Sequence record: MK817115.1
Length of the DNA: 64,000 nucleotides
Strand: one strand, 5' to 3'
Shown: in pieces, positions 165 through 27,307 of the stretch
How positions within the stretch are numbered: the first letter of the stretch is position 1
Layout: every line of letters starts with the position of its first letter
Notes under the pieces: generated by a model
The model's database searches: none
Told to the model about the DNA's origin: nothing
Seen by the model: only the letters and a program-made list of their open reading frames with translations
Program-made: the position numbers and the translations under genes

Positions 165-5422
<5,258 letters not shown>

Positions 5423-23216: not shown

Positions 23217-25421
23217 TTAACTGTTTCTCTCACCTTGAGTGTTTTCAGAGATAGTTCTTAGATAGTTATTTGTCTGTTGCACGGCAGATAGAGATTGCTC
23301 ATTAACATCAGCAAGTTTTTTAAGTAACTCTTTCATGTCTTCTGATATTGTGGCATTATTATTAGCATTTGCCATACTACTACCACTATTTATCATCGCT
23401 TTCATGGCCTCATAATCGTCCGGTTCAGCTTGAATTGGTGGTTCATTTGGACCCCATGCTGATTTATCAAAAGTTTTTGGAGTTATGGTAACATATGGTG
23501 CAACATGTTCAGATTTTTCGATTCTCGCAGTTGCTCTTGGCTTATTTTCAAGACCACTACTAATAAGTTTTTCAGCAACTGATTCATCAAGGGGTTTTGG
23601 TTGTTTAAAGTTTCTACTTGAATTCCATTTTAAAAAACCATCAAATGAACTAGAAATATAATCACCAAATGAATTCATTTTTTCTTCAAAATAATTATTA
23701 ACTTTTTCTGCACCATCGGTAACAGAATTGTTTTCTACTTTTACTTTGTCGTCTGATCCACCAAACCAACCTTTAACAGAATCCCAAAGTTTACCAGGAA
23801 GATCCATTAGGTTATTCATAAAGCTATCAAATGCTTCTGAAACTTTATTATATCCACTACCAAAAATTTCAGTACCTAACCCTTCTAACCACTGCTCAAA
23901 CTCACCACCAATCCTATCCAAATACGCAACTGCATCTTTCGCAATAGGAACCAAACCAAAACCATCAAGTGCTAACTCTCCGATAAATTCCCATGCACCA
24001 TCAGTACGGTCTGCAATATCAGTAAGGTAATCCGCAATAGAATTTTGTGTATCTGCATACATTTTATTAAATGGTTCAGTAAATTCTTTACTAATCCATC
24101 TATTGAATCTATCAGTGAATTGTGTTAGTTTATCTGCTGGTTGACTCTTAGGATCATTAATCGCAGCTTCCATATCAAGTAGTTGTTGGTTGAAGGTTGC
24201 TGCCGTAGTGTTTCCTAATTGTATCTGATTTAATAAATCTTGCTTTATTAGTTCTTTGTTCTTTTTAACAAATTCCAATTGTTGACGGCGAATTTCTTGT
24301 GAATCAGTAACACCACTACGTACCAAGTTCTCACCTAAATCAGCAAATTGGTTCAGTACTGGAGTCAATAAATCATCTGGTACTCCACCAATAGTTAAAC
24401 GATGTGAAATTAAACGTAGAAAATCTGCACCAGCATCACCCATACTGGCAGCAGCTTCGTTAAATGCTTTTGATGTTGCAACTGCTGCTTTACTAGATAA
24501 TCCAGAATAGTTTTGTAATGCGATTTGCATTGAACGTGTGTCTAATGATTTATCTAAGTTTTGTGTTTTATTTAATAGTGCATCAACTGACTCACCCATA
24601 CTTTTACTGAACTTAGTCATACTCATGATAAACTGTTCAGTACTTTTTGCTTGATCCATACTACGTAACATTTCTCTTCCACCAAATTGCTTTTGGAATT
24701 TAATATTACGTGCAGTTAAATCAGTTAATGTTTTTTGAGAAACACCATATAAACCTAATTGATTTTGTGCTTGTTGCACAGTACCCAATAATTTACCAAA
24801 TGTAGAAACACCATCACCATATGCACCATCTAATTGTGCAACAACGGCACTATGAGTTTGTAATGCTTCACCAAATGCATCAATACTCATCATTGATGCA
24901 CCAGCACCTTTTAATATGGAGCCGTAACCTTCAGATAGAGCGACACCAGCACTGTTTATTCTATTATAAACTTCAAGCTGTGCATTTAACACATTATAAA
25001 CTGCTAAACCAGCGTCAGCGACCAATTTGAATGCAGATGCTGCTGCACCAACTGGACCTGGGATCATTGCTAATGAACCAGCAAATGAAGATGCACTCAT
25101 TCCTAGTGAGTTTACAACATTGCTAACGTTTGCAGACGTACTCATCATAGTTTTGCCGACATTCGATACTTCAGATGATAATGATTTGAATATTTTTCCA
25201 AATTCTTTACCATCATCAGCTTTGTTATTTGTTCGAGAGCCACGGTTTCCAGTACTTGATGAATTACTTCCATTACGTTTTCCACTTTTAGAACCGGATT
25301 TCTTTCTATCATTTTTTATATTTTCAGCCAATAACTCACGAATAGCACTCAAACTATCGTTGTTATCTTTAGTTTGATTAACCAACTGCTGGAGTAGGTA
25401 ATCACTTGTATTTCCAGCCAT
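23217..25421 (-). CDS. Probable tape-measure / gp29-like hub protein
   Basis: 734 aa, predicted helical, Ala/Gly/Ser-rich; divergent from the gp26/gp51-like pair; CATAAATA box at 25454-25461. Confidence 0.6.
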   Translation of the reverse strand: MAGNTSDYLLQQLVNQTKDNNDSLSAIRELLAENIKNDRKKSGSKSGKRNGSNSSSTGNRGSRTNNKADDGKEFGKIFKSLSSEVSNVGKTMMSTSANVSNVVNSLGMSASSFAGSLAMIPGPVGAAASAFKLVADAGLAVYNVLNAQLEVYNRINSAGVALSEGYGSILKGAGASMMSIDAFGEALQTHSAVVAQLDGAYGDGVSTFGKLLGTVQQAQNQLGLYGVSQKTLTDLTARNIKFQKQFGGREMLRSMDQAKSTEQFIMSMTKFSKSMGESVDALLNKTQNLDKSLDTRSMQIALQNYSGLSSKAAVATSKAFNEAAASMGDAGADFLRLISHRLTIGGVPDDLLTPVLNQFADLGENLVRSGVTDSQEIRRQQLEFVKKNKELIKQDLLNQIQLGNTTAATFNQQLLDMEAAINDPKSQPADKLTQFTDRFNRWISKEFTEPFNKMYADTQNSIADYLTDIADRTDGAWEFIGELALDGFGLVPIAKDAVAYLDRIGGEFEQWLEGLGTEIFGSGYNKVSEAFDSFMNNLMDLPGKLWDSVKGWFGGSDDKVKVENNSVTDGAEKVNNYFEEKMNSFGDYISSSFDGFLKWNSSRNFKQPKPLDESVAEKLISSGLENKPRATARIEKSEHVAPYVTITPKTFDKSAWGPNEPPIQAEPDDYEAMKAMINSGSSMANANNNATISEDMKELLKKLADVNEQSLSAVQQTNNYLRTISENTQGERNS

Positions 25422-25509: not shown

Positions 25510-25517
25510 TATAAATA
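25510..25517 (+). promoter_or_regulatory. Late promoter TATAAATA
   Basis: Exact consensus upstream of the gp26-like gene. Confidence 0.75.
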
Positions 25518-25551: not shown

Positions 25552-26388
25552 ATGGCTATGAATCCACTTGCTAAGTACACTAAAATTGAAGAGATCAGTA
25601 CTAAGTTAGTTACAAACGGCGTTATTCCTTATAAAGAAGGAGTTCTAGGTCCAAAAGGTGTCAAATGTGGAGTTTGTGCACGTAGTGCACGTGATGAAAT
25701 GACACTTAATACCCCCGATATGTTACTAAACGGAGATGCAGTATCCCGTGTTATTGAAAACTGTGTTCCTAATGTAATTGACGCTGATGAGTTGTATGTA
25801 AATGACGTTGAAATGCTTCTTATTGCTATTAAAGTTGCTTCTAAAGAAGAAACATATGATATTAACGTTGTATGTCCTGAATGTGAAAAAGAAGGTCGAT
25901 TTGAACGTAATCTATCATATCTTCTTGAAACTGCACAAGCATTTGAAGAAATCCCATCAATTGATTTAGATAATGGACTACGTTTAGAATTTAGACCACT
26001 GACATGGAAAGAATATTCATCGTTTGCTGAACGCATGTTCAGTGAGCAGCAGAAGACTAAGTTTCTTGAAACTGCTGATATTGATAAAGATGAAAAAGTA
26101 AAAATATTTTCTGAAGTATTTGAAAACATGGCTCAACTTAACTTCGATATGATTGGTGGAGTTATTGCAAAAATTATAACACCAGATGGTGATGAAGTAG
26201 TTGAAAAAGAATTTATTAATGAATGGCTTGGACAACAATCGAAGGGAGTACTTAAACTAATTCGTGAAAAAATGGATGAAGTACTTGAAATTGGTGTATC
26301 TCATAGTATGGAAGTAGAATGTGATGGATGTAATCATCAATGGGAAATTGATGGACTAAAATATGATCCTAGTCATTTTTTCGAGTAA
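25552..26388 (+). CDS. gp26: Baseplate hub assembly protein (gp26-like)
   Basis: MAMNPL..., ARDEMTLNTPDMLLNG, DVEMLLIAIKVAS, CPEC and CDGC zinc pairs. Confidence 0.8.
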   Translation: MAMNPLAKYTKIEEISTKLVTNGVIPYKEGVLGPKGVKCGVCARSARDEMTLNTPDMLLNGDAVSRVIENCVPNVIDADELYVNDVEMLLIAIKVASKEETYDINVVCPECEKEGRFERNLSYLLETAQAFEEIPSIDLDNGLRLEFRPLTWKEYSSFAERMFSEQQKTKFLETADIDKDEKVKIFSEVFENMAQLNFDMIGGVIAKIITPDGDEVVEKEFINEWLGQQSKGVLKLIREKMDEVLEIGVSHSMEVECDGCNHQWEIDGLKYDPSHFFE

Positions 26389-26597
26389 TGCTTCTCCAGT
26401 CATCTCCTGAAGAAATACAAGAAGTACTGAAGGAGATAGAACTGAATAAGTCAGAAATCAAAAATGCACTAATGGAATGTTCTGTATATATGGATAACAT
26501 TGACTATGGAACACTCCTTAATATGCCATTAATAGATAGAGACTTATTAGTTAAGTCTTTTAATAAAAAAATTAAAAAACAAAACGAGAAGCACTAA
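26388..26597 (+). CDS. gp51-like hub/tail assembly chaperone segment
   Basis: TAATG overlap with the gp26-like stop; DYGTLLNMPLIDRDLLV resembles the gp51-type SLSELENMxPWER motif. Confidence 0.6.
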   Translation: MLLQSSPEEIQEVLKEIELNKSEIKNALMECSVYMDNIDYGTLLNMPLIDRDLLVKSFNKKIKKQNEKH

Positions 26598-26608
26598 TTT
26601 TCATATAG

Positions 26609-26634
26609 CCAGCACATTGTTGCTGGTTTTTTTT
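26609..26634 (+). terminator. Intrinsic terminator
   Basis: CCAGCA-cattgt-TGCTGG followed by T8. Confidence 0.85.
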
Positions 26635-26853
26635 GGTTTTAAACTACAGAATTATTTGAATTGAATTATGAAAGGATTAATTTTAATATTATTGGATTCA
26701 TCTAACTCATTTCATTCGTTAGCTGAAGAATATTCGTTACTACGTAACTCATATTCATTTAATTAAATTAATTATAAAGAACTTTAAAAGATTTAATACT
26801 TGACGGGATTTGTTGAGGACATTTTCATCCCCCCGCAGGGGAATGAAGACAAT

Positions 26854-27307
26854 AAAAAAGAGACAATGAAGTCTCTATTTCTTGACGCTGATGGTTTCAG
26901 CATTTATTGTATTGCGAATTTCTTAAAAATATATTAAGAACGAAAGCGGGTTGCTCTGTTTCTCTCTATCGCAGTCATGTGCAACGGTCGTCAGTCTTAA
27001 TCATCCTGACACTCACCTGAAAGTCTATACAATCAAACTTCAGGCTGTTTATTAAAATCACTTAATAAACTCCCTTAGCAAATCTGGTAAGGTGCGATCC
27101 TTATATGTCTATCTAGGAACTCTCTGTATGCTTATCGGAGTTCTTTATTGAGCCGCATTGCCGTGAGGGGTTCAAACTATGCCCACATCTAACGGGTTTC
27201 TTTTGCTCATCGCACTGTTGAACTGCTCATCTGCCATCTACATTTTCGATAGGATCAGGTTCTAATTTATATGCATTTCTGCATTCAACAGGATTGTCAT
27301 TACTACA
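26854..27307 (-). ncRNA. Candidate ~450-nt structured non-coding RNA
   Basis: No ORF of 60 aa or more; own promoter (27314-27341) and terminator (AGAGAC-ttcatt-GTCTCT-T run, 26854-26876); many hairpins and a 7-bp long-range pairing. Confidence 0.6.

Follow-up and report, generated by a model that had tools for sequence, protein, structure and literature searches.

The analysed window is a stretch of 64,000 nucleotides (record MK817115.1) that is, at the locus described here, 100% identical to Escherichia phage PBECO4/phAPEC6, a RaK2-like jumbo myovirus. On the plus strand, ORF1 (25552-26388) encodes a gp26-like protein of 278 aa, an inferred baseplate-hub assembly chaperone. It matched PF12322 (T4_baseplate, gp26/gp51 family) with E=3.2e-24 and 86.3 bits, against a Pfam gathering cut-off of 24.5, and phrog_150 with E=1.6e-34. 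Protein alignments revealed four conserved cysteines (C108, C111, C257, C260) and an invariant C-terminal Phe-Phe. An AlphaFold model of ORF1 reached a pLDDT of 95.4 and a pTM of 0.90; its fold was not compared with PDB or BFVD, and the structure of the downstream extension was not predicted. Other than PF12322, no Pfam, NCBIfam or PDB sequence hit was obtained for ORF1, either with the sequence or, for PDB, with its profile, and none of the known Phage_TAC families was detected as a homologue. A TATAAATA motif at 25510-25517 (+), 35 nt upstream of the ORF1 start, is a candidate T4-type late promoter. This reading is inferred from the T4 late-promoter consensus and from a gp55-like late sigma gene in the window, while the motif itself is not enriched in the window (7 found versus 10.7 expected).

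ORF1 ends with the codons CAT (26374-26376), TTT (26377-26379), TTC (26380-26382), GAG (26383-26385) and TAA (26386-26388). Thus, a slippery heptamer T_TTT_TTC lies in ORF1 phase at 26376-26382 (+), one codon before the stop. The -1 frame is open from 26373 to a stop at 26595-26597, and the extension counted from heptamer base 7 (26382-26597, +) comprises 71 codons and matched phrog_18291 with E=1.7e-36. Within it, public records annotate ORF2 (26388-26597, +; 69 aa, hypothetical protein), whose ATG at 26388-26390 overlaps the ORF1 stop (TAATG). We found no clear Shine-Dalgarno sequence before this ATG, only a GAG two nt upstream. Neither Pfam nor NCBIfam gave a hit for ORF2, and a PDB search with the extension profile gave nothing significant. 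An intrinsic terminator-like hairpin plus T-run at 26607-26636 (+) directly follows the stop of the extension, ends the two-ORF transcription unit and is also annotated as a terminator in the UE-S1 record. Rfam and ARAGORN found nothing at or near the site beyond sub-threshold, terminator-like hits. The observation made in the sequence-only reading, a T-TTT-TTC site from which a -1 slip leads straight into the downstream ORF, is correct, including its position.

The same reading had placed the pair next to the probable tape-measure gene and called the second ORF gp51-like, and both details are weaker. The divergent neighbour (23217-25421, minus strand, 734 aa) is a virion structural protein (phrog_14121), and its linkage is conserved in jumbo relatives. 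It was detected in virions of phAPEC6 as gp231c (79.7 kDa), in CBB as CBB_251 and in PA5oct. The RaK2 and vB_Ec-M-J records call it tape-measure-like. However, searches of Pfam, PHROGs (E up to 5), NCBIfam and PDB gave no evidence for a tape measure, so that a tape-measure or hub function is only inferred. The likeness of ORF2 to T4 gp51 is weak for this phage, but solid for the equivalent pieces in T4-like relatives, as detailed below.

In-phase heptamers alone are not rare in this AT-rich genome. The 41 ORFs of at least 150 aa in the window hold 78 in-phase X_XXY_YYZ heptamers, 9 of them T6N, but among these only the one in ORF1 opens into a -1 frame that runs at least 30 codons past the stop of its ORF. 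Conservation of the heptamer and of the frame in relatives had been put forward in advance as the test of the frameshift reading, and we examined both. All 20 named relatives, down to 23-28% identity, keep the heptamer in phase and an open -1 frame of 57-79 codons past a stop whose position varies by 1-12 codons, while the +1 frame is closed within a few codons. The same was found in 67 of 67 analysable IMG/VR jumbo-type contigs and in 80 of 80 cyanophage-type contigs. A broad T4-like alignment was too divergent for such a locus scan, but a narrower one worked. Pooled, all 172 related loci (151 unique ORF1 sequences, down to about 23% protein identity) carry an in-phase slippery heptamer in the last 20 codons and a -1 extension of 57-82 codons. 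Since the arrangement recurs in about 180 independent sequences from isolates and metagenomes across several virus families, a chance juxtaposition or sequencing artefact is contradicted by the comparative data.

We next asked whether the nucleotides themselves are under selection. The heptamer is the only invariant run in the DNA alignment, and it is conserved in 150 of 151 unique relatives. The codon supplying heptamer base 1 is one of 12 codons for 10 amino acids, yet it ends in T in all 150 T-type heptamers (Ser appears as both AGT and TCT), with a joint probability over 37 representatives of about 1e-16. Five loci use A_AAT_TTT instead, and each follows a codon ending in A (GTA, ATA or ACA). 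Synonymous-site conservation and this covariation within the heptamer support selection on the nucleotides, although Phe-Phe is also invariant at the protein level, so that part of the T-run conservation could be protein-driven.

An alternative without recoding is that ORF2 is made only as a separate 69-aa protein by termination-reinitiation at the TAATG overlap, and that the T-run merely encodes the conserved Phe-Phe. In favour of this, the window has the overlapping ATG at the third codon of the extension, 49 of 151 relatives have an ATG within the first four codons of the extension, often as an ATGA overlap, and Vibrio phage D528 has lost the heptamer and keeps an ATG at a TAATG overlap. 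However, the extension is conserved from its first codon (R..LL..PEEI), while the first ATG lies more than 10 codons in, or is absent, in 77 of 151 sequences. PA5oct and RsoM2USA have no start codon within 120 nt of the ORF1 stop, and RaK2 has one only about 70 nt downstream. Protein-level selection cannot explain a T at the third base of the preceding codon for 10 different amino acids, nor its switch to A together with an AA in the next codon. In addition, T4 gp26, which has no extension to reach, spells its Phe-Phe TTC TTT. Reinitiation as the sole mechanism is therefore unlikely. The caveat of the sequence-only reading that the overlap also allows re-initiation nevertheless remains valid for this particular phage, where a separate product made by translational coupling is possible and may coexist.

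To look for a stimulator, we predicted RNA structure downstream of the heptamer. A hairpin at 26397-26444 (+) in the window (MFE -16.6 kcal/mol, z=-2.28) is a candidate, but it starts 14 nt after the heptamer, which is further than usual, and is not conserved in shape among relatives. RNAalifold on 16 sequences found no consensus structure, and only lineage-specific hairpins exist. The 60 nt downstream fall in the lowest MFE decile of the phage's own ORF1 windows in 19 of 44 representatives. These results bear on a second alternative, transcriptional slippage, in which RNA polymerase adds one extra U on the T-run of a subpopulation of mRNAs. One added U would give the same product, the T6 run is lengthened to T7-T9 in RsoM2USA, XacN1, phiM7 and about 10 IMG/VR contigs, and a conserved RNA stimulator is lacking. 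On the other hand, six Ts is shorter than the runs usually prone to polymerase slippage, a topic covered by a review (Atkins et al. 2016, PMC5009743). The A_AAT_TTT class has only a T5 run (four of its Ts within the heptamer) yet keeps the X_XXY_YYZ form and the same extension. Base 7 is C in 141 of 151 sequences, which limits the run length, and stable downstream structure is enriched in many lineages, as expected for ribosomal pausing. We thus consider transcriptional slippage unlikely.

The feature is shared by T4-like phages, including T4-like cyanophages, KVP40-like phages, S-BM1, ValKK3, Aeromonas phage 65 and phiM7. There the extension is the small ORF annotated gp51, and the ValKK3 piece matched phrog_634, 'baseplate hub assembly catalyst', at E=3.5e-21. 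T4 itself is the exception, as it has no heptamer. Its 249-aa gp51 is a gp26 paralogue, matching PF12322 over residues 1-201 (E=7.7e-55), and its C-terminal tail matched the extension pieces, with phrog_634 over residues 147-246 (E=8.2e-24) and hhalign over residues 208-241 (P=2.5e-4). T4 gp51 thus carries the extension in frame, which shows that the long form is a real functional protein. PF12322-like clusters number 1,288, and none of the top 150 family representatives carries an in-frame C-terminal extension. For the jumbo phages the link is less certain: the window's piece matched only phrog_18291, and hhalign of the jumbo pieces gave P 0.018-0.028 against T4 gp51 and 0.001-0.003 against the T4-like pieces, all aligning the same motif, so that homology of this phage's extension to the tail of T4 gp51 is neither secured nor dismissed by these scores.

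Gene order and virion content were examined as further features of lambda-type chaperones. In the window, the pair does not lie between tail tube and tape-measure genes, but between the divergent 734-aa gene and a non-coding region followed by the endoVII gene. In ValKK3, phiM7 and S-BM1 the order is a tail-tube-family gene (phrog_45), gp26, the extension and a large protein, which resembles the lambda order of tail tube gene, G, T and tape-measure gene. Since only the large protein of ValKK3 gives a weak TMP hit (phrog_58, E=5.9e-5), gene order does not settle the comparison. ORF1 and ORF2 are not listed among the phAPEC6 virion proteins although the neighbour gp231c is, and in PA5oct the neighbour is flagged as found by MS but the ORF1 homologue is not. 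A T4 review lists gp26 and gp51 as hub assembly chaperones and states that gp51 is not in the particle. However, the CBB GenBank record labels the ORF1 homologue a 'structural protein', although it is absent from the part of the CBB paper's virion table that we examined, and the evidence on absence from virions therefore points both ways. Searches of the openly accessible literature, which leave out subscription journals, found no description of this frameshift, and the phAPEC6 and CBB papers do not mention one. The efficiency of this heptamer in E. coli was not found in the text of Sharma et al. 2014.

Taken together, these results are best explained by a programmed -1 ribosomal frameshift, and we hold this explanation with high confidence. 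In this view, most ribosomes translating the gp26-like gene read through T_TTT_TTC and stop two codons later, giving the 278-aa short form. A fraction would slip back one base, with both tRNA-Phe re-pairing on TTT TTT, and continue for 71 codons in the -1 frame, giving a long form of about 348 aa and roughly 40 kDa whose extra C-terminal domain corresponds to 'gp51'. By analogy with lambda G/GT and with the genetics of T4 genes 26 and 51, the two forms would act together as non-virion chaperones in assembly of the baseplate hub and tape-measure complex. The shared gp26 domain would hold one partner and the extension would recruit another, in a ratio fixed by the slip frequency. Our analysis establishes the site, its phase, the open frame, their deep conservation, the nucleotide-level selection and the existence of an in-frame long form in T4. 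That the slip is ribosomal, how often it happens, and the chaperone role with its partners are inferred, as no protein, ribosome-profiling or reporter data entered the analysis and neither the frameshift product nor a need for it in a fixed ratio was measured. The proposal of the sequence-only reading, a G/GT-type -1 frameshift fusing the gp26-like and gp51-like ORFs, is supported, and the conservation test that it named is passed strongly.

If correct, the frameshift would be the long-missing equivalent of lambda G/GT in the T4 superfamily and its jumbo relatives, with the short and long forms of one PF12322 chaperone jointly loading the tape-measure or hub complex. T4 and its close kin would be the derived exception, having replaced the frameshift by gene duplication and fixed the two forms as paralogous genes 26 and 51. 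This broader reading, which we regard as somewhat more likely than not, would make the two-form chaperone principle universal among long-tailed phages and would explain why 'gp51' is a stub of 31-60 codons in cyanophages, KVP40-like and phiM-like phages. It suggests roles for two long-enigmatic T4 genes, described as a 'hub assembly chaperone' and a 'catalyst', as the short and long forms of one chaperone. The data also correct annotation, since in more than a hundred public genomes and contigs the extension is either not called, truncated at an internal Met, or labelled as a tiny 'gp51' or hypothetical protein. Furthermore, about 180 sites with three heptamer classes and within-heptamer covariation provide a natural data set for models of bacterial -1 frameshifting.

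The closest described systems are the lambda G/GT tail assembly chaperones and their counterparts in other long-tailed phages, such as P2 E/E+E', Mu and others (Xu, Hendrix and Duda 2004; Atkins et al. 2016, PMC5009743). As in these, two ORFs overlap with the second in the -1 frame, a slippery heptamer lies a few codons before the first stop, a short abundant product is accompanied by a rare C-terminally extended one (here predicted), the products appear not to be in virions, the genes are linked to a tail-tube-family gene and a large, possibly tape-measure-like gene in T4-like relatives, and the arrangement is conserved despite very low sequence similarity, with a downstream ORF that often lacks its own start. 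In contrast, the protein family is unrelated, namely PF12322, a roughly 280-aa alpha/beta protein with a four-Cys motif, the T4 homologues act in baseplate-hub assembly, the jumbo phage pair is divergent from a virion protein gene, and an ATG allows possible separate translation of the extension. The review states that G-T frameshifting is conserved in long-tailed phages 'except T4'. The present data indicate that the T4 superfamily does have such a frameshift, in an unrelated protein family, and that T4 proper has replaced it by gene duplication. Compared to T4, ORF1 belongs to the same family as both gp26 and gp51; gp26 corresponds to the short form, and gp51 has the domain order predicted for the long form. 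However, T4 encodes the two forms as separate, divergently placed paralogous genes. The gene after T4 gene 26 in the -1 frame is gene 25, which has its own ATG, and T4 is also annotated to make gp26' by internal initiation. Full-length separate gp51 genes occur in about 1,375 phage records, mostly from enterobacterial, Acinetobacter and Aeromonas hosts. Finally, the E. coli dnaX tau/gamma frameshift likewise uses tandem -1 slippage on an X_XXY_YYZ heptamer to yield two forms of one protein in a set ratio, but there the shifted product is the shorter one and the site has strong flanking stimulators, whereas here the shifted product is longer and no conserved stimulator was found.

To place the finding in context, we first compared the 2-kb region surrounding it with public records. 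This region was 100% identical to Escherichia phages PBECO4 and phAPEC6 and 99.6% identical to 121Q (genus Asteriusvirus, RaK2-like jumbo myoviruses). Public records annotate 25552-26388 as 'baseplate hub' and 26388-26597 as 'hypothetical protein', and none of the records we fetched joins the two. ORF1 (25552-26388, 278 aa) matched PF12322 'T4_baseplate' (E=3.2e-24) and phrog_150 'baseplate hub'. Its last codons are CAT TTT TTC GAG TAA, which places an in-phase T_TTT_TTC heptamer at 26376-26382, the stop codon at 26386-26388 and an ATG at 26388. That is, the slippery site described in the sequence-only reading is present as claimed. The -1 frame is open from 26373 to 26597, while the +1 frame closes after 7 codons. 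In the window, and in a minority of relatives, a -1-frame stop codon (the TAG inside CCT AGT or CCT AGC; 26370-26372 in the window) lies immediately upstream of the heptamer, so that the -1 frame opens only 3 nt before the slip site. Any earlier accidental shift would then terminate at once. In-phase heptamers as such are common in this AT-rich DNA (78 in 41 ORFs of at least 150 aa), but only this one leads into a long -1 frame beyond the stop.

A TATAAATA motif lies 35 nt upstream of ORF1, and a terminator-like hairpin with a T-run (26607-26636) follows the extension. The two ORFs therefore form one short unit. TATAAATA is the 8-nt T4 late-promoter consensus and may be read as a T4-type late promoter, although the motif is not enriched in the window. 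Between the terminator and the endonuclease VII gene, a stretch of about 500 nt (26781-27280, plus strand) contains no ORF of at least 50 aa, yet it is 69-78% identical in EJP2, 7t3, XbC2, CBB, Serratia BF, Yen9-04 and GAP32, whose flanking gp26-like proteins are only 52-60% identical. RNAalifold on 8 sequences gave 112 pairs, 38 of them with compensatory double changes and many with G-U intermediates on the plus strand. This region is probably a large structured RNA, but it had no Rfam match at E up to 1, and no tRNA or tmRNA was found.

Conservation of the heptamer and of the reading frame in relatives had been proposed in advance as the test of a frameshift. We fetched the locus from 20 named phages (Asteriusvirus, RaK2, 7t3, XbC2, CBB, Serratia BF, Yen9-04, GAP32, Vibrio 2.275.O, Phosso, Atu_ph07, PA5oct, RsoM2USA and SCTP-2), with protein identities to ORF1 ranging from about 98% down to 23%. 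Nineteen have T_TTT_TTC and one has T_TTT_TTT, always in ORF1 phase. The ORF1 stop lies 1 to 12 codons further on, and the -1 frame stays open for 57-79 codons past it. In a DNA alignment of 16 of them, the only invariant run is the six Ts. In the record of Escherichia phage CMSTMSU, flagged UNVERIFIED, the gp26-like gene is split into two ORFs by one frame break, which looks like a possible homopolymer or assembly error. The -1-frame pieces align from their very first codon (consensus R..LL.S.PEEI...), well upstream of the ATG that annotators chose in A4, 7t3, CBB, GAP32 and SCTP-2. PA5oct and RsoM2USA have no start codon within 120 nt of the ORF1 stop and RaK2 has none for about 70 nt, and in those three records the extension is not annotated at all. 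In addition, a scan of IMG/VR with the ORF1 alignment gave 68 loci, of which 67 could be analysed. All 67 have an in-phase heptamer 1-11 codons before the stop and a -1 extension of 58-75 codons, while the +1 frame is mostly open for only 2-7 codons.

We then asked whether selection acts on the nucleotides and not only on the encoded Phe-Phe. Over 172 loci (151 unique ORF1 sequences; 37 representatives at 60% identity or less), heptamer bases 1-6 are T in 150 of 151 and base 7 is C in 141 of 151. The codon that supplies base 1 is CAT, CGT, AAT, AGT, TCT, TAT, GAT, CTT, GCT, GGT or GTT, which covers 10 amino acids, with Ser in two codon families. Using each gene's own third-position T share, the joint probability of that T over the 37 representatives is about 1e-16. 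Among 197 family proteins, 13 lack the C-terminal Phe-Phe, and we fetched DNA for eight of these. Four have A_AAT_TTT preceded by GTA, ATA or ACA, as does the IMG/VR contig L052, two have T_TTT_TTA, and two keep only a T_TTT tetramer, while all eight have a -1 extension of 63-75 codons. The switch of base 1 from T to A together with bases 2-3 is the covariation expected of tandem tRNA slippage, and it is expected neither of protein-level selection nor of homopolymer stuttering. In one locus (L184; CP092417.1, assembly GCA_023716865.1, positions 501-1564), a gp26-like gene with a 71-codon -1 extension and only a T_TTT tetramer sits in a bacterial chromosome of 7.2 Mb, followed by a gene for a protein of 687 aa. 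This could be a prophage-like or tailocin-like element, or a contaminant contig.

The first ATG of the extension is within four codons in 49 of 151 sequences, as in the window, but it is more than 10 codons in, or absent, in 77 of 151. We found no consensus RNA structure downstream of the site. Individually, however, 6 of 10 tested sequences fold with z of -2 or lower, and the 60 nt downstream fall in the lowest MFE decile of the phage's own ORF1 windows in 19 of 44 representatives, where about 4 are expected. In the window the predicted hairpin is at 26397-26444 (-16.6 kcal/mol, z=-2.28).

A weak tblastn hit led us to T4-like phages, where the feature explains 'gp51'. In cyanophage S-BM1, gp26 ends AGT TTT TTC GCG TAG, and the -1 frame runs 62 codons further, covering the small ORF annotated 'T4-GC_12 gp51'. 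Aeromonas phage 65, the KVP40-like ValKK3, Sinorhizobium phiM7 (T_TTT_TTT) and Xanthomonas XacN1 behave the same way, and in ValKK3 and phiM7 the downstream ORF is annotated 'baseplate hub assembly catalyst'. Eighty of 80 cyanophage-type IMG/VR contigs have T_TTT_TTC one codon before the stop, preceded by AGT, TCT, GCT, AAT or GGT, and their extension has a median of 61 codons. There are exceptions. Vibrio phage D528 has no heptamer and has an ATG at a TAATG overlap. In the record of Stenotrophomonas phage IME-SM1 the extension homologue lies in the +1 frame and there is no in-phase heptamer, which may be real or may reflect a homopolymer miscall or assembly error.

T4 itself differs. Gene 26 ends with Phe-Phe spelled TTC TTT and has no heptamer, and the overlapping -1 ORF is gene 25, which has its own ATG and starts at the gene 26 stop (TAATG) without any slippery site. 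T4 gp51 (249 aa, divergent from gene 26) matched PF12322 over residues 1-201 (E=7.7e-55) and phrog_150 (1e-87), and is therefore a full-length gp26 paralogue with an extra C-terminal tail. The T4 record used (KJ477684.1; locus 1216-1965, minus strand, and 2016-3040, plus strand) does not annotate gene 51 at all. The tail of T4 gp51 matched phrog_634, the family that the ValKK3 -1 piece hits at 3.5e-21, and it also matched the T4-like -1 pieces by hhalign (residues 208-241, P=2.5e-4). Thus, T4 carries in one reading frame the domain order that the frameshift would create elsewhere. Full-length separate gp51 genes occur in about 1,375 phage records, mostly from enterobacterial, Acinetobacter and Aeromonas hosts. 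For the jumbo phages, the likeness of the extension to gp51 is only suggestive: hhalign gave 0.001-0.03, always on the same N-x-S/M-P-x-E-R motif, and these pieces hit phrog_18291 rather than phrog_634. None of the top 150 of 1,288 family clusters has an in-frame C-terminal extension, and the stop after the slip site is therefore universal in this branch.

With regard to function, the predicted structure of ORF1 is confident (pLDDT 95.4, pTM 0.90) and shows a mixed alpha/beta fold with four conserved Cys (C108, C111, C257, C260) in two CxxC-like pairs. A zinc-ribbon-like site is likely, but it is not described for T4 gp26 in the review we read. These Cys attract misleading automatic names: the record of Yersinia phage fHe-Yen9-04 calls the protein a 'Lead, cadmium, zinc and mercury transporting ATPase', and JGI calls homologues 'ribosomal protein S27E'. 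ORF1 has no sequence relative in the PDB and no Phage_TAC hit; its fold was not compared with solved structures. A T4 review lists gp26 and gp51 as hub assembly chaperones and states that gp51 is absent from the particle (PMC3004832), and the phAPEC6 virion proteome lists the 79.7-kDa neighbour but neither ORF1 nor ORF2. One GenBank record already labels a gp51 homologue 'tape measure protein assembly chaperone'. In T4-like relatives the gene order is a tail-tube-family gene, gp26, the extension, then a large protein. The chaperone role and its partners are therefore reasonable inferences, not results.

The sequence-only reading had placed the pair next to a probable tape-measure gene. The neighbour, of 734 aa, is a conserved, divergently linked virion protein of a size that could suit a tape measure for a tail whose contractile section measures 94 nm, but none of our searches identified it as one. 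The large virion-protein gene (about 620-1,070 aa) stays next to the gp26-like gene across very distant jumbo phages (Vibrio phage 2.275.O and our loci L008, L012 and L019-L021). It is usually divergent, but in the Vibrio phage it lies directly upstream on the same strand. This conserved linkage hints at a functional tie.

Taken together, the analysis supports the earlier interpretation of a -1 frameshift joining the two ORFs. A conserved programmed -1 frameshift is very likely, although experimental proof is missing, and a G/GT-like chaperone function is plausible. We found no description of a gp26/gp51 frameshift in the literature searched, which covers few subscription journals, so that a prior description cannot be excluded. 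Atkins et al. state that G-T frameshifting is conserved in long-tailed phages 'except T4'. The mechanism and logic are those of lambda G/GT, whereas the protein family is different and the T4 homologues act in hub assembly.
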